Shown here: in pieces, positions 3,775 to 51,805 of the stretch
Layout of the letters: each line of letters starts with the position of its first letter
Position numbering within the stretch: position 1 is the stretch's first letter
DNA from: Trichoplax adhaerens
Taxonomy: Eukaryota > Animalia > Placozoa
Direction: 5' to 3'
NCBI RefSeq assembly: GCF_000150275.1
Contig: NW_002060958.1
Location: forward strand, 1,000,272 to 1,064,271
DNA: 64,000 nt
Made by a program: the position numbers and the translations under genes
Notes under the pieces: generated by a model
The model's input: only the letters and a program-made list of their open reading frames with translations
Told to the model about the DNA's origin: nothing
Database searches by the model: none

Positions 3775-4480
3775 ATCGTACAGCATGGACTGGCAAGCGC
3801 AAACTTGCTATCACAGTATTCTGCACTGTAGTGATTGTACTGTACACTGTAGCCACTGTCCACAGTACTGTATGGAAAAATGCGCTTGGACAAGTGTACA
3901 GTACAGTACGTACACTGTAGTGATTGTCCACAGTATGGAAAAATGCTCTTGAAAAAGTGTACTGTACACTGTAGTCACTGTCCACAGTGTACTGTACTGT
4001 ACTGTATGGAAAAAACCGCTTGGACAAATGTACTATACACTGTAGTCAATGTCCACAGTACAGTACTGTATGGAAAAATGCTCTTGGAAAACTGTACTGT
4101 ACACTGTAGTCACTGTCCACAGTATGGAAAAAACCGCTTGGACAAGTGTACACTGTAGTCACTGTCCACAGCATGGAAAAATGCTTAGTAGTGATTGTAC
4201 TGTACACTGTAGTAACTGTGACCATCACTCCATCGTACTGTACACTGTACACTGTAGTCACTATCCACAGTATGGAAAAATGCTTTTTCCGCTTTTCATC
4301 CTACAGCATGGAAGCGCAAGCGCAAACTTCCCATCACTCTATTCCACATTGTAGTGACTGTCAACAGTATGGAAAATGCTTTTGCACAAGTGCCATAACT
4401 ATTGCAAACTTGCCATCACTCTATTCTACACTGTAGTGACTGGCAACACGGTGGAAAAATGCTTTTGCACAAGTGTTTGG
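3775..4480. repeat. Minisatellite of irregular 50-70 bp units built on TACTGTACACTGTAGT(C/G)ACTGTCCACAGTATGGAAAAA
   Basis: TATGGAAAA recurs at about 3871, 3935, 4005, 4069, 4123, 4271 and 4368. It generates the repetitive junk ORFs in the ORF track. Confidence 0.9.
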
Positions 4481-13452: not shown

Positions 13453-15603
13453 TCATACTCGTAAGCGCTCTTCACTATTTTGATCTTCATCCTTGGCCGA
13501 TTGGCAAGTAGTAAATAATTTCTTGTTCAGAAAATATCCAAAACCGACAGACGTCAGAAACAGTAAAGCGAAAAAGAAAGGCTCATTATATAGCATGTAG
13601 TAAATAAGGAGGGTAGTAGCAAGGAATGCTAACATGGCTGCCAAAAGAGCTCTACCTAAATACCGCAATAGCTTACGTAAAATGACACTAATAAAACTAG
13701 CTCCAATTCGAACTGGAGGTATACAATGTCCGTCCCAATTGCAAATTCCACTACCATTTCCACAGTTGCTTCCTTCTGGCTTGTACATTCCAGGCAACTT
13801 ATCATATTCTGGATAGTCGGAAATACTTTGACAAGTCTTTGTGTTTTCATTCCAACAGCATAGATGGCAAGATTTCTCCTTCACTTGGCACTCGCATGCT
13901 TGACGACCATATTGTAAGCATAAAGATCCTGAACATTCTCCATTTTGGCACGTCTTTCTATTACCTTCACATAACGTTGAATCAGGCTTCGTTTTTGGTG
14001 GAGGGCAAACCGAACCGTGTGTCTTGCCATCACATAAACTGCTATGATAGCATTCTTCTTCATGGAGACAAGCAATTTCTTCCGATACATTATAAAACAT
14101 GCATGAATCTGGATTACAACAAGGACCTTGGCTTGGACTACATTGACTCGACGTTATCAGTTTGCAAGTTTCTGCATCACAACAACTGTCTGAACAATCT
14201 TCTTTTGCGCCGCAATCGCATTCTTCACCAGGTTGAATTCTACCATTGCCACATTGATTGGAGGCAACATTTACATCAAGTAACTGTTTCCTGGAACATG
14301 TATTCAATCGATCACGTAGAGTAGTGAGAATAGATTGCTTATCGCATGGATTAGTTTGAGCTAAAATAGCTTTAGTCGTGCTTTTATCTAAGCATTCTCT
14401 ATCTTCGTGCCATAGACCAGTGGCAATAGCTAATTCTTGAATAAATTCATTCTCTATCATGGCTTGAGGCAGAGTAGAATTGAGACTTTTTCGACTGATA
14501 ATCATTACATTTCCCGATATCATTTCTTGAACAGTAGGATGCTGCTGGTAAGGTGAACATAGACCAAAGTTTTTTGTTCCATGAGTCCAACTGATACTGT
14601 TTTCGTGGTTAGTGAATTCACGATTAGTAAGTACAATAACTAAGCAGTAATCGTTGTAATTTAGCCGAGAACGTTGCAGTAAATATTCCATAGGATCTGA
14701 GCTATCTTCCTGCCCCGCCTCATTGACGTACCAATCTGGCTCTTCAATTTGAACGCTATCCAGTTGAAATTCTATTTCGTCCCTAATGTAATGGTCATCA
14801 TCCACAGACAAGGATTGGATCAATTTATTCCCTGCTAGAACAATATTCCATAAAGCTGCTTCAATGACTGGTTTGTTATTATGGTAGCTAACAGTAAAGC
14901 TAGCATCAGAAATGGCTAGCAGCTTGCAAATTTTTTTCTTAACTTGGAGAGGACCTGATTTCCAGTTGAGAGGAGAATCGTCTAGTCTATTAGGCGACAC
15001 CTTTGATTGTATAAACATCTCATCACTGTCTTCTTCCAAAAGCGAAAGATCCTGATCTGTAGCAAGATATTTGTCAAGATTTTCAATACTTTCAGTCAGA
15101 ATACCATACCTGGCAGTTCCACTACGATATTGATATGGAATCAAGTCTGCAAAACTATATATTAATGCATATCTTTCATCATCATGGTCACTAAACCAAG
15201 AATCAACATAATAAATCTTTGTAAATTTTCCACGTCCTATTGCGATTTTTCCGTAAAATTCTCCATGGCTTGTCACTATTCCATCGACGTATGATTGTGA
15301 ATTATTAGTTACTTTTCCAACAACACTAATAGGCAAGATGGTACAATTTTGGCTGTTATTTCGATTCCATGAGACATTCTGTGAAGGTCTGATGGATAGG
15401 AGTATCGTTTTATTGGCCACAGAGAAGTTAAATTGGCCACGACATGAGGATCGATTATAGTCGAAATAAGCCTTGATAGGCGAGTGGAGTTGATAATTGG
15501 TAAGATGTCGCTTGATTTGGTCTTCACTTTTTGCTAGACTAATGGAAGCTAGCAATAGCAAAGTAGCAATCGTGGTTAGTAATTTAGAAACATTTGAATT
15601 CAT
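13453..15603 (-). CDS. Intronless ADAM10/ADAM17-like (M12B reprolysin) membrane protein, 716 aa, predicted catalytically inactive
   Basis: Signal peptide, prodomain, ADAM10-like protease fold (DYCLVIVLTNREF, GLCSPY), disintegrin domain (CGNGRIQPGEECDCG..CSPSQGPCC), Cys-rich region and a C-terminal hydrophobic region. The zinc motif HExxHxxGxxH reads QELAIATGLWH. Confidence 0.92.
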   Translation of the reverse strand: MNSNVSKLLTTIATLLLLASISLAKSEDQIKRHLTNYQLHSPIKAYFDYNRSSCRGQFNFSVANKTILLSIRPSQNVSWNRNNSQNCTILPISVVGKVTNNSQSYVDGIVTSHGEFYGKIAIGRGKFTKIYYVDSWFSDHDDERYALIYSFADLIPYQYRSGTARYGILTESIENLDKYLATDQDLSLLEEDSDEMFIQSKVSPNRLDDSPLNWKSGPLQVKKKICKLLAISDASFTVSYHNNKPVIEAALWNIVLAGNKLIQSLSVDDDHYIRDEIEFQLDSVQIEEPDWYVNEAGQEDSSDPMEYLLQRSRLNYNDYCLVIVLTNREFTNHENSISWTHGTKNFGLCSPYQQHPTVQEMISGNVMIISRKSLNSTLPQAMIENEFIQELAIATGLWHEDRECLDKSTTKAILAQTNPCDKQSILTTLRDRLNTCSRKQLLDVNVASNQCGNGRIQPGEECDCGAKEDCSDSCCDAETCKLITSSQCSPSQGPCCNPDSCMFYNVSEEIACLHEEECYHSSLCDGKTHGSVCPPPKTKPDSTLCEGNRKTCQNGECSGSLCLQYGRQACECQVKEKSCHLCCWNENTKTCQSISDYPEYDKLPGMYKPEGSNCGNGSGICNWDGHCIPPVRIGASFISVILRKLLRYLGRALLAAMLAFLATTLLIYYMLYNEPFFFALLFLTSVGFGYFLNKKLFTTCQSAKDEDQNSEERLRV

Positions 15604-18280: not shown

Positions 18281-18814
18281 TTATAGTCGTTCACAGTAGC
18301 TAGGGTATTTTTCTGGCTGGAAATTATAACTTCTATCCGTCTCTATTGGTTTTGAAGATTGGCTATTGTAAACTCGAATATAGCAGACTACATGTGTTGC
18401 TGTAGTCTCGGAAGAGGATTTCTCGTTCAAGCAATATTTGTTTTTACGATGTTCTTCGATTGATTTCAATTCCAATTGGCATCCACGTTCTTTGGTTAGT
18501 TTGCCAGTGCCATAAATAACTCTCGGTTTCTTACCCATTTTTTCATCGCAATGATGCCCGTCTCCTATACCGCGAGTTTTCAATGATGTTTTAAGATCAT
18601 CATGAAATTCTGCGATACCGATGTAATAGTATTGGTAACCATTTCCTATTTCTCTTAATGTGTCTTCAAATTCCTGAACAGTTAATTGTACAATTGCTGG
18701 TTCATCGTTTGCAGTTAATGTTAATGGTACAATTTTTGATTCATAGTTTGCCATAGTGCTGCCAGTAACAAAATCCGATTCTACACGTTGTGTCGATTTC
18801 AGTGATTGCAACAT
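18281..18814 (-). CDS. 177-aa protein, candidate GIY-YIG superfamily nuclease (circularly permuted type)
   Basis: A 534-nt ORF in AT-rich DNA. Motif order: YYIGI, LKTR, VIYGT, LELKSIE, CLN, VCYIRVY. A plausible 5'UTR intron lies at about 18854-18919 and a TACTGTAC palindrome at 18953-18970. Confidence 0.6.
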   Translation of the reverse strand: MLQSLKSTQRVESDFVTGSTMANYESKIVPLTLTANDEPAIVQLTVQEFEDTLREIGNGYQYYYIGIAEFHDDLKTSLKTRGIGDGHHCDEKMGKKPRVIYGTGKLTKERGCQLELKSIEEHRKNKYCLNEKSSSETTATHVVCYIRVYNSQSSKPIETDRSYNFQPEKYPSYCERL

Positions 18815-20019
18815 CTTTTATACCATCTGATGAGCTTAAGTTAATTATTTTACTATAAATAAATAGCTGACTCATTACTTTTAACAATAGTAAATTCCGA
18901 TTAAAAATAAATTACTGACTTGTTGATTTGGTAATTCACTGGTGCTATACTATACTGTACACGTACAGTAATTTTACTACTGTAACTCAAGTGTATGAAT
19001 TGGCTTTGGATGTTCTTGTGAATAAGAATGGTAGTACTGCAAGTACACTCCTACAATCGGATTAGTTCATTAATTTATTAATACAAATTGAGAATGTTGG
19101 AGAATCTCAAATGGCATGATTGTAATATTTGTATAGTAGACTGCTCATTATAATATAATAAAATGAAATAACGGTTCCTTTCTATCATTTCAGTTAGTAC
19201 GCTATCGATTTGCAGTTAGGCTAGCATTTGCTATGACTGTTGATAAGAATGAAGGGGAGACATTTCAGAGTTACGATATAATATTATCTGAATGCGTTTT
19301 CATCCATAGGTCATAGCCAACTCTAGTTGCAGCCAGTCTCGATAATGAATGAAAGGAAAATATCTACAATCCCATTTGACAATATTAAGAAGAAAGTAGA
19401 GAATAGATTAAAAGATGGCGCAATAATTCAAATGTAGTCATGTTCATGGCATTCAAATACAGTACTTCTGTTATGGCAATAGAGTAGTATCGTATTTCAA
19501 CTAGTGTTGTATAATATCACAACCTACACTATCCTAGATGAGAGTGGTTGATGCTATTATACAATCAATGTCAATAGTTCATTATAATAAGCTCAACGAA
19601 TAATACTCACGCAGGATAGCGCTACCAATATTTGATCAAGATGTTGAGACTTTATTAATTAATGCTAAAATATTTTAGTAGGAATGCTGTAGATCGATTG
19701 GCGCATAAAAGAAAGAATTTAAAATATTTTCTTGATGCAATTACAATATACTGTACTGTATGACGGGACTGTGTCTGTTTTGGAACATGGCATCTACTGT
19801 ACAAATATTAGAATGAATAGAATTATAGAAATCAATATAAAGAATGCGAAAGTACAGCAAGTTCGCAGTATGCACATCCGTACAATTTTTTGCATGCATA
19901 CTGCGAACCTGCTGGACTTCCGCATTCTGTACTATAAATAATATAATTAAAATGAAGGAAAATTAATATAACGCCACCCAAATTACCATTAAAATGATAA
20001 CCACTAGTTACTATAATTA

Positions 20020-21810: not shown

Positions 21811-22539
21811 TAAAGTTACTGAACCTCTGTTAAATGAGCACATTATCGTAAACCATTAGTAAAGCGACGGGAGTTTGCACTAGTATGAATAAATCGTCTC
21901 CAAGCTAAAGTACTGTCATAACGAACTGTTTGGCATAATATTTGAACGAGATGAGAGCAAAAGTGTCTGTGCGTCTAGAGTGATCAGTCCAGGTCTTCTT
22001 CTAGTTGTCCATGACTGTAAATAGTGTATCTTGACAATGGCTTCTATCCGTTGTGTTTCCATTTTTAGTCGTTAACGTTGGCACCAGGGACTTGATACAC
22101 TCCGCCTAGTATGCTTGCTAAAAATTCTCTTTTTATTTAGGATTGGCTGCATTTTAATCGTATAGCCGTAATAACGTAGAATACCCTTATTTTAGTAATT
22201 CATTACCTTGTCTTATGATAACACATTAAAAGACTACTAAAAAGAAAGAAATACTGGACAGCCTTCCATGCAAAATAATGTTCAAACTTATCCTTTTATC
22301 GATCATTCCACTATACGATACCGATGAAACCGTTTATCATATTGCACAAAACTAACTCAGCAGGCTAATGGCAGCTAATTTGGATACTAATTGCAAACAG
22401 TCCAGCATAATATACCGTTACAGACATGCGACACTGTTAAAATAACCAGTAAAATAATTGATTCATTAAGGAAATATCCAAAACAGAGAGACATGATAAA
22501 CAGTAAGACGGAAAAGAAAGATACATTTTATAACAGGTA

Positions 22540-22920
22540 GTCAATGAAGAGGCTAGCAACAAAGAATACCAACATAGCTGCCAAAAGAGCTTTACCTAAA
22601 TACCGCAATAACTTAGGCAAAAGTATAGCGATAAAACTACAGTAACTCTAATTCCAACTGCAGGTATACAATGTCCATCCCAATTGCAAATTTTACTACC
22701 ATTTCTAAAGTCGCTTCCTTCTGGCTTGTACATGTTAGGCAACTTTCCATATTTTGAATAGTCGGAAATACTTTGACAAGTCTTTGTATTTTCATTCCAA
22801 CAGCATCGAGGTCAACATTTCTCCTTCACTTGACACTCGCATACCTGACGACCCTATCGTAAGCATAAAGACCCTAAACATTCGCCATTTTAGCACGTCT
22901 TTCTGTTATCCTCACATAGC
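22540..22920 (-). pseudogene. Truncated, frameshifted duplicate of the 3' part (Cys-rich and transmembrane region) of the ADAM-like gene
   Basis: Colinear with about 13600-13975 (shared GCTGCCAAAAGAGC..TACCTAAATACCGCAATA and TAGTCGGAAATACTTTGACAAGTCTTTGT). There is a 5-nt insertion near 22640 and no ORF. Confidence 0.9.
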
Positions 22921-51617: not shown

Positions 51618-51805
51618 TATACTGTACAGCCTTTGGTCATACTGTACACTGTACAGGATTGCCAGTCCAGTCGAAGGTCGTCCAATACCGTACAGTCCAT
51701 GTCTGACTGGACGAGAGACTGTACTGTACACTGTGGAATGGAATACTGTACTGTACTGTACTGTACAGTACAAAGCCTCTCCGTACACAATACAATGTAC
51801 TGTAA
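51618..51805. promoter_or_regulatory. TACTGTA/TACAGTA-rich tract about 190-380 bp upstream of the ALIX start codon
   Basis: (TACTG)n run at about 51744-51765 plus many TACTGTAC and GTACAGT copies. The role is inferred from position. Confidence 0.45.

Follow-up and report, generated by a model that had tools for sequence, protein, structure and literature searches.

A rare, very divergent, and probably GIY-YIG-related family with a small, stand-alone and possibly circularly permuted member in Trichoplax adhaerens

Introduction

The GIY-YIG domain (PF01541 clan) is represented by I-TevI (1LN0) and the N-terminal domain of UvrC (1YCZ/1YD3). In both enzymes, the Tyr of the YIG motif acts as the proton acceptor, an Arg stabilizes the phosphate, and a Glu holds the metal (PMC2630997). 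Here, we describe an open reading frame (ORF) of 177 codons plus stop at positions 18281 to 18814, on the reverse strand of a 64,000-nucleotide stretch of the Trichoplax adhaerens genome (contig NW_002060958.1, positions 1,000,272 to 1,064,271; called the window throughout), whose product is very probably a remote member of this superfamily. The locus had been interpreted once before from its letters alone, as a stand-alone and apparently circularly permuted GIY-YIG nuclease; the ORF and every motif named in this sequence-only reading were found where it had placed them. Residues are numbered below on the 157-amino-acid (aa) form of the protein (P0001), to which 20 is added for ORF numbering.

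With the canonical domain, the protein shares the YIG strand, the helix Arg, a His after the Arg, the long-helix Glu, and probably an Asn 15 residues later, and it is within this YIG-to-Asn segment that profile-profile, profile-PDB, and tentative structural matches lie. It differs in lacking the GIY strand with its Tyr, in having YIG preceded by a strand and a helix, and in scoring below threshold against Pfam. Further differences are an additional, invariant H-H-x-D motif, the conservation of Cys residues, and an invariant Y-x-R-x-Y strand after the Asn.

The superfamily is also represented in animal genomes by SLX1, ANKLE1, and the Penelope endonucleases. SLX1 ends in a C-terminal zinc finger and has SLX4 as its partner, ANKLE1 carries ankyrin and LEM modules, and Penelope endonucleases are fused to a reverse transcriptase (RT) and occur in multiple copies. 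These additional modules are absent from the Trichoplax protein, whose gene is single-copy and neither fused nor adjacent to an RT. The marks of I-TevI/Seg homing endonucleases were likewise not found, as the protein has no Pfam DNA-binding domain and no phage relatives, and its tail (residues 133 to 157) is unconserved and predicted to be disordered in an AlphaFold2 (AF2) model. Bacterial YhbQ/UPF0213-like proteins (about 100 aa) resemble it in being small, single-domain, and devoid of a DNA-binding module; however, they possess the canonical hairpin and match PF01541 with E values of 1e-12 to 1e-19, whereas the family described here is eukaryote-associated and PF01541 misses the window protein. 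R.Hpy188I is another GIY-YIG family that was missed by standard searches, was found via metagenomic relatives, and has noncanonical or relocated active-site residues, although this bacterial restriction enzyme retains the order of the hairpin (I/V-Y-x9-K-I-G; PMC2630997).

A family of small proteins with invariant, putatively catalytic residues

Searches of Pfam, NCBIfam, PHROGs, PADLOC, and PDB sequences with the window protein gave nothing usable, and a word-indexed protein search recovered only the protein itself. An exhaustive phmmer scan of 1.84 billion representatives yielded seven small relatives (114 to 163 aa; E values of 2e-8 to 1e-4), and a profile search contributed three more, resulting in an alignment of 11 sequences in which the ten relatives are 25 to 32% identical to the Trichoplax protein. 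A search unrestricted by length gave no credible longer relative. Fifteen columns are invariant across all 11 members (M1, Y44, I45, G46, A48, R61, H67, H68, D70, E95, C108, N110, Y125, R127, and Y129); apart from M1, no residue before F43 is conserved. The UvrC and I-TevI catalytic residues, namely, the YIG Tyr, the Arg, and the Glu, all have counterparts among these positions. Conservation of Tyr, Arg, Glu, and Asn in homologs had been proposed as a test of the sequence-only reading, and because each residue that it singled out sits on an invariant column, the motifs recognized by eye are not a product of chance.

Three matches were set aside during these searches. The Calx-beta repeat protein P0004 (2039 aa) matches ORF residues 7 to 58 only, at a pairwise E value of 0.001 that is inflated by near-identical repeats; this part of the ORF (18641 to 18796) encodes the placozoan-specific N-terminal 50 residues and is 31% identical to one P0004 Calx-beta repeat unit, a resemblance judged to be chance. 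P0010, a long, repeat-rich protein in the phmmer output, was rejected as a relative, and a DUF3369 match (E 0.015) was dropped since it was present in only one of the 11 members.

Probable remote kinship with the GIY-YIG superfamily

The family alignment was compared using hhalign with 37 canonical GIY-YIG domains, comprising stand-alone proteins and UvrC from 40 Pseudomonadota genomes, E. coli UvrC, the T4 Seg proteins, I-TevII, and one locus of the window's own genome. A score of 30.4 (P 7.3e-5, probability 62%) was obtained over 61 columns, in a register that pairs Y44-I45-G46 with Y-V-G and both R61 and E95 with their canonical counterparts, Arg and Glu, respectively. The reversed alignment scored 10.2, column-shuffled alignments (n = 99) scored 9.6 ± 1.9 with a maximum of 15.6, and alignments shuffled in blocks of eight columns (n = 100) scored 15.3 ± 2.1 with a maximum of 26.2; none of the shuffled controls reached 30.4.

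Further comparisons pointed to the same superfamily. When the family profile was searched against PDB sequences, the sole match was the UvrC GIY-YIG domain 1yd3, which was nonsignificant (E 1.4) and had YIG and the catalytic Glu in register. One relative, P0006, matched PF01541 from the Arg region to the Glu helix at a subthreshold 15.1 bits (E 0.028; gathering threshold, 22.6 bits). In structure comparison, I-TevI and UvrC ranked 6 and 7 among 48,161 chains. The top Foldseek match in BFVD was a GIY-YIG domain protein of Yasminevirus (E 1.1e-3), with the next row at E 0.33; the best matches there, Yasminevirus A0A5K0U8Q9 and Klosneuvirus A0A1V0SLJ9 (probabilities of 0.99 and 0.47; TM scores of 0.43 and 0.42), are longer proteins (198 to 215 aa) that are 14 to 15% identical to the Trichoplax protein, and A0A5K0U8Q9 superposes poorly overall (root mean square deviation of 15). 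Finally, the named language-model neighbors of the Trichoplax protein and of its relative P0003 all belong to the GIY-YIG clan (GIY-YIG, T5orf172, and MUG113).

These six lines converge, each of them weak when taken alone, and membership in the superfamily, as the sequence-only reading had claimed, is highly likely, in the form of a remote relationship. The data support a rare, unnamed, and very divergent new family inside the known GIY-YIG superfamily. If confirmed, it would be a GIY-YIG-clan family missed by current domain libraries, and placozoans and some uncultured eukaryotes would possess a stand-alone nuclease without a known counterpart in other animals.

The arrangement of the conserved residues was examined on an AF2 model of P0001 (predicted local distance difference test [pLDDT] score of 77, predicted template modeling score of 0.73, and 75 of 157 residues with pLDDT of 90 or higher); a model built from the single sequence was discarded (pLDDT 30). 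The YIG half-motif is modeled as strand 43 to 49 (YYIGIAE, with Y44, I45, G46, and A48 invariant; 18608 to 18628, this and the following coordinates being on the reverse strand) and aligns with the YIG/YVG of UvrC and canonical domains. Helix 54 to 60 ends just before the invariant R61 of LKTR (18572 to 18574), which hhalign aligned with the canonical catalytic Arg and which lies 17 residues past the Tyr, compared with about 10 in canonical domains. It is followed by the family-specific invariant H-H-x-D (H67, H68, and D70; 18545 to 18556), with helix 68 to 73 (HHCDEK) modeled at this point; the motif is probably the counterpart of the His after the Arg in canonical domains. After strand 79 to 83, helix 88 to 102 contains the invariant E95 of LELKSIE (18470 to 18472), aligned with the metal-binding Glu (E76 of T. 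maritima UvrC). The invariant N110 lies in C-L-N (YCLN; 18425 to 18427), in a loop around residue 110 that also includes C108. Confident profile alignments stop before N110; its position at Glu+15 falls in the 12- to 15-residue range of the superfamily and reproduces the spacing of E75 and N90 in I-TevI. Judged from the alignment and the model, residues 43 to 110 would map onto the canonical beta2-alpha-alpha-beta3-alpha-Asn core.

Chain order of the predicted fold

The GIY half-motif has no equivalent ahead of this core. No Tyr-bearing strand lies within hairpin distance (about 10 residues) before YIG, where the model instead has helix 26 to 38 directly preceding the YIG strand and, before it, strand 20 to 24, with no conserved residue in either; the missing first strand reported from the sequence alone is thus borne out. 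Conservation is found at the other end of the domain. Past the Asn, in a part of the chain without conserved residues in canonical domains, the family has a C-terminal strand (residues 121 to 128, VVCYIRVY; 18368 to 18394, reverse strand) with the invariant residues Y125, R127, and Y129, and the 10-residue block 121 to 130 is modeled at a mean pLDDT of 93.

Circular permutation is the most economical reading of this pattern, because the Y-x-R-x-Y strand is the sole conserved element able to supply the missing GIY strand and its Tyr. In strand-helix-strand units, the two strands usually lie parallel, unlike the antiparallel canonical GIY hairpin; therefore, strand 20 to 24 would not mimic that hairpin, whereas an antiparallel C-terminal strand could. 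In the I-TevI superposition, model residues 38 to 112 fall on residues 11 to 92 of the chain, and beta-1 of I-TevI is left unmatched. Among solved structures, even the best match in sequential order scores unusually low, as would be explained by a changed chain order. When columns 117 to 131 were moved in front of the core, the hhalign score rose from 29.7 to 32.2, with G-I-v-Y aligned with G-V-Y, compared with 29.8 for an N-terminal-strand control.

On this evidence, replacement of the GIY strand by the C-terminal strand is plausible, with the arguments for and against it evenly poised. The fuller proposal, namely, a first case of natural circular permutation in the GIY-YIG fold, restricted to eukaryotes, with the GIY strand moved to the C terminus (G-I-V-Y-x-R-x-Y) and the active site reshaped by the added Arg and H-H-x-D, is advanced tentatively and stands just short of that balance. 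No permuted GIY-YIG fold was reported in the 2006 survey of the superfamily or in full-text literature searches. If the permutation is true, a GIY-YIG active site can be built from strands in another chain order, which would be useful for studies of fold evolution and for engineering.

Overall, we consider a real gene with a GIY-YIG-derived core to be the probable explanation of the locus as a whole. Several observations weigh against this interpretation or its parts. PF01541 gave no match to the window protein, Foldseek searches against the PDB gave no GIY-YIG or other clear match, even when its own matches were given a second look, and none of the six lines of kinship is strong singly. The family alignment is limited to 11 sequences, and comparison of H1 with Trichoplax sp. 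H2 shows no sign of purifying selection at such depth. With respect to permutation, the gain in hhalign score is nonsignificant, as column-shuffled strands moved to the same place scored 31.1 ± 2.1 and 29 of 100 reached the observed value, and strand 20 to 24 is a possible equivalent of beta-1. Of the permutation proposed in the sequence-only reading, the loss of the GIY strand and the invariant Y-x-R-x-Y strand after the Asn have stood, but the profile test of the rearranged order has not added to them.

The main rival to permutation is a GIY-YIG-derived core in its original order, in which strand 20 to 24 would be a degenerate beta-1 without Tyr, a helix would have been inserted before YIG, and the C-terminal Y-x-R-x-Y strand would be a family-specific addition serving as a sheet edge, substrate contact, or dimer interface. 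Besides the outcome of the shuffled-strand test, it draws on the confident N-terminal strand and helix before YIG in the AF2 model and on the UvrC superposition, which begins at model residue 14, and R.Hpy188I demonstrates that residues of a GIY-YIG active site can be replaced or moved elsewhere (PMC2630997). We nevertheless regard this arrangement as rather unlikely: across the 11 members, the N-terminal strand has no conserved residue, in contrast to the three that are invariant in the C-terminal strand, the expected parallel pairing of a strand-helix-strand unit does not reproduce the hairpin, and the superposition leaves I-TevI beta-1 without a partner. Were the C-terminal strand merely accessory, the family would still represent a GIY-YIG core working without the first Tyr.

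An improbable explanation is that there is no GIY-YIG kinship at all, and that YIG, Arg, and Glu arose by convergence in a small alpha/beta protein of new fold, which might bind metal through Cys/His and have another function. Here, six different methods would have to point to one superfamily by coincidence, with an hhalign score that is 7 standard deviations above the block-shuffled and 11 above the column-shuffled controls and with the catalytic residues in register.

Proposed activity and origin

In the reading that we prefer, a divergent GIY-YIG domain, the YIG-to-Asn segment would form the canonical catalytic core, with the YIG Tyr, a phosphate-binding Arg, a His, a metal-binding Glu, and a structural Asn. 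Because all core catalytic residues are invariant, phosphodiester bonds would most likely be cut through the one-metal mechanism of GIY-YIG enzymes, and the C-terminal Y-x-R-x-Y strand may supply the strand and Tyr that are gone from the N terminus. The intact catalytic set makes an active, metal-dependent nuclease reasonably likely. Library scans found no DNA-binding, RING, LEM, ankyrin, or RT module in the protein; since it lacks DNA-binding, RING, LEM, and RT modules, it would act nonspecifically or need a partner. It could carry out repair-type, structure-specific cutting with a partner, or it could have been acquired from a virus-like source and retained; the structural neighbors from giant viruses offer a lead to origin but no evidence of it. 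The practical impact of the family is modest until its activity and biological role are known.

The sequence-only reading had also entertained a bacterial, viral, or mobile origin, a role as a defense or toxin effector, and a link to the rearrangement of a neighboring ADAM-like gene. An effector of this kind, or a mobile-element remnant derived from a homing endonuclease, a Penelope endonuclease, or a gene of giant viruses and connected with the ADAM duplication, has little probability. Such an origin would fit the giant-virus proteins among the best BFVD neighbors, the patchy distribution, the intronless coding part, and the position of the gene between the ADAM-like gene and its partial copy; however, no relatives were found in phage records, IMG/VR contigs, JGI metagenome contigs, or one-per-species prokaryote genomes (single-protein queries, with tblastn against phages). 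Moreover, the genome contains a single copy and no further fragments, and the context of the gene includes no RT, DNA-binding module, intein, or intron. Searches of PADLOC and PHROGs were blank, neither candidate N terminus has a signal-peptide-like hydrophobic stretch when read by eye, and Trichoplax sp. H2 has the same locus. A tie to the ADAM duplication is unsupported, as it would rest on adjacency alone.

Least likely of all is that the Trichoplax ORF is an untranscribed or decaying relic, because, although the H1 and H2 coding sequences (CDS) differ at three nonsynonymous sites and one synonymous site and are no more conserved than their surroundings (99.25% identity for the CDS and 99.56% over 8.4 kb of the locus), four differences are too few to measure selection, none of them falls on an invariant column, and the full frame and 15 of 15 family-invariant residues are intact at a divergence of about 30% identity.

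Gene structure and copy number

The gene is real and lineage-restricted, with a single exon and no introns in its coding part, and its product is predicted to be a small (157- to 177-aa) intracellular protein. Two starts are available. Met1 of the ORF is the start in the Trichoplax sp. H2 annotation, in which the ortholog appears as the 177-aa hypothetical protein TrispH2_009436. Translation from the second Met, Met21, gives the likely true CDS (18281 to 18754, reverse strand) of 157 aa. Met21 has A at −3 and G at +4, matches the form held in the public database, and lies at about the point where homologs begin to align. In addition, a possible TATA box, TATAAAAG (18815 to 18822, reverse strand), directly 5' of the first ATG would, if used, put the transcription start past that ATG. 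From these sequence features, Met21 is the likely true start.

Three copies of TACTGTA/TACAGTA lie 140 to 170 nucleotides upstream of the ORF (18953 to 18984). The cluster, which the sequence-only reading had taken as an upstream palindrome of this gene, is real; its association with the gene is not specific, since the TACTGTA heptamer occurs 101 times in the window compared with 12.4 ± 3.4 expected from shuffles, an approximately eightfold enrichment. The motif is often clustered as direct and inverted copies, for example, at 3838 to 4242, 18953 to 18984, and 51620 to 51804. It looks like a genome-wide, possibly promoter-associated host motif rather than a property of the nuclease-like gene.

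Neither the protein nor the family profile matched a second place in the 105.6-Mb assembly (1414 contigs), in agreement with the earlier description of a small, stand-alone gene. The H2 ortholog is identical at 174 of 177 residues (98%). In the window, the nuclease-like ORF sits, as first noted, between an ADAM-like ORF (13453 to 15603) and a partial, broken duplicate of it (22456 to 22919), and the same ADAM, nuclease-like gene, and ADAM-copy arrangement is present in Trichoplax sp. H2. The ADAM-like ORF is on the reverse strand, intronless, and 716 aa in length, with a PF00200 Disintegrin domain in the H2 annotation. The partial copy, also on the reverse strand and about 7 kb away, corresponds to ADAM-like residues 544 to 696 at 50 to 60% aa identity.

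Homolog contigs and related sequences

Homologs were found as lone genes on contigs of 1 to 2.5 kb, with AT-rich flanks and coding sequences richer in GC, and one homolog was located on a 3.2-Mb contig with sparse, short ORFs. These compositional features fit eukaryotic rather than prokaryotic genes. On the 3.2-Mb contig, which carries P0003 (ENA ERZ25878582), a second ORF of exactly 122 aa is located about 8 kb away on the opposite strand and may be an inverted paralog.

The DNA of three homolog contigs did not match the Trichoplax genome. The metagenomic contig with homolog P0002 (L002) contains a stretch of about 500 nucleotides (950 to 1445) that is 72 to 77% identical to at least four places in the Trichoplax genome (C1359:5538-6051, C1366:40614-41127, and places on C852 and C1036). 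In Trichoplax, a 438-aa ORF has this stretch as its 3' part; two copies of the ORF are 97% identical, and it has a weak AAA_19 helicase-like match. The same stretch in L002 is riddled with stop codons and is a decayed repeat common to L002 and placozoans. Because this helicase-like repeat is shared with Trichoplax, P0002 may derive from a placozoan relative.

The Cys residues of the family vary among its members. Within the part of the protein encoded at 18368 to 18556, most of them conserve C92, C108, and a third Cys that immediately precedes the last strand; P0002 is without C92 and the third Cys, and the Trichoplax protein is without the third Cys and has C69 and C124. Together with H67 and H68, this pattern hints at a disulfide or metal site.

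Three canonical PF01541 matches are also present in the Trichoplax genome (C1414:11786529-11786660, C1414:4022900-4023100, and C898:2239-2415). Two of these share an open frame with the pattern GSNPPP..QGVY..YVGET.NL.RR..EH, which corresponds to the canonical GIY-YIG hairpin, unlike the gene studied here.
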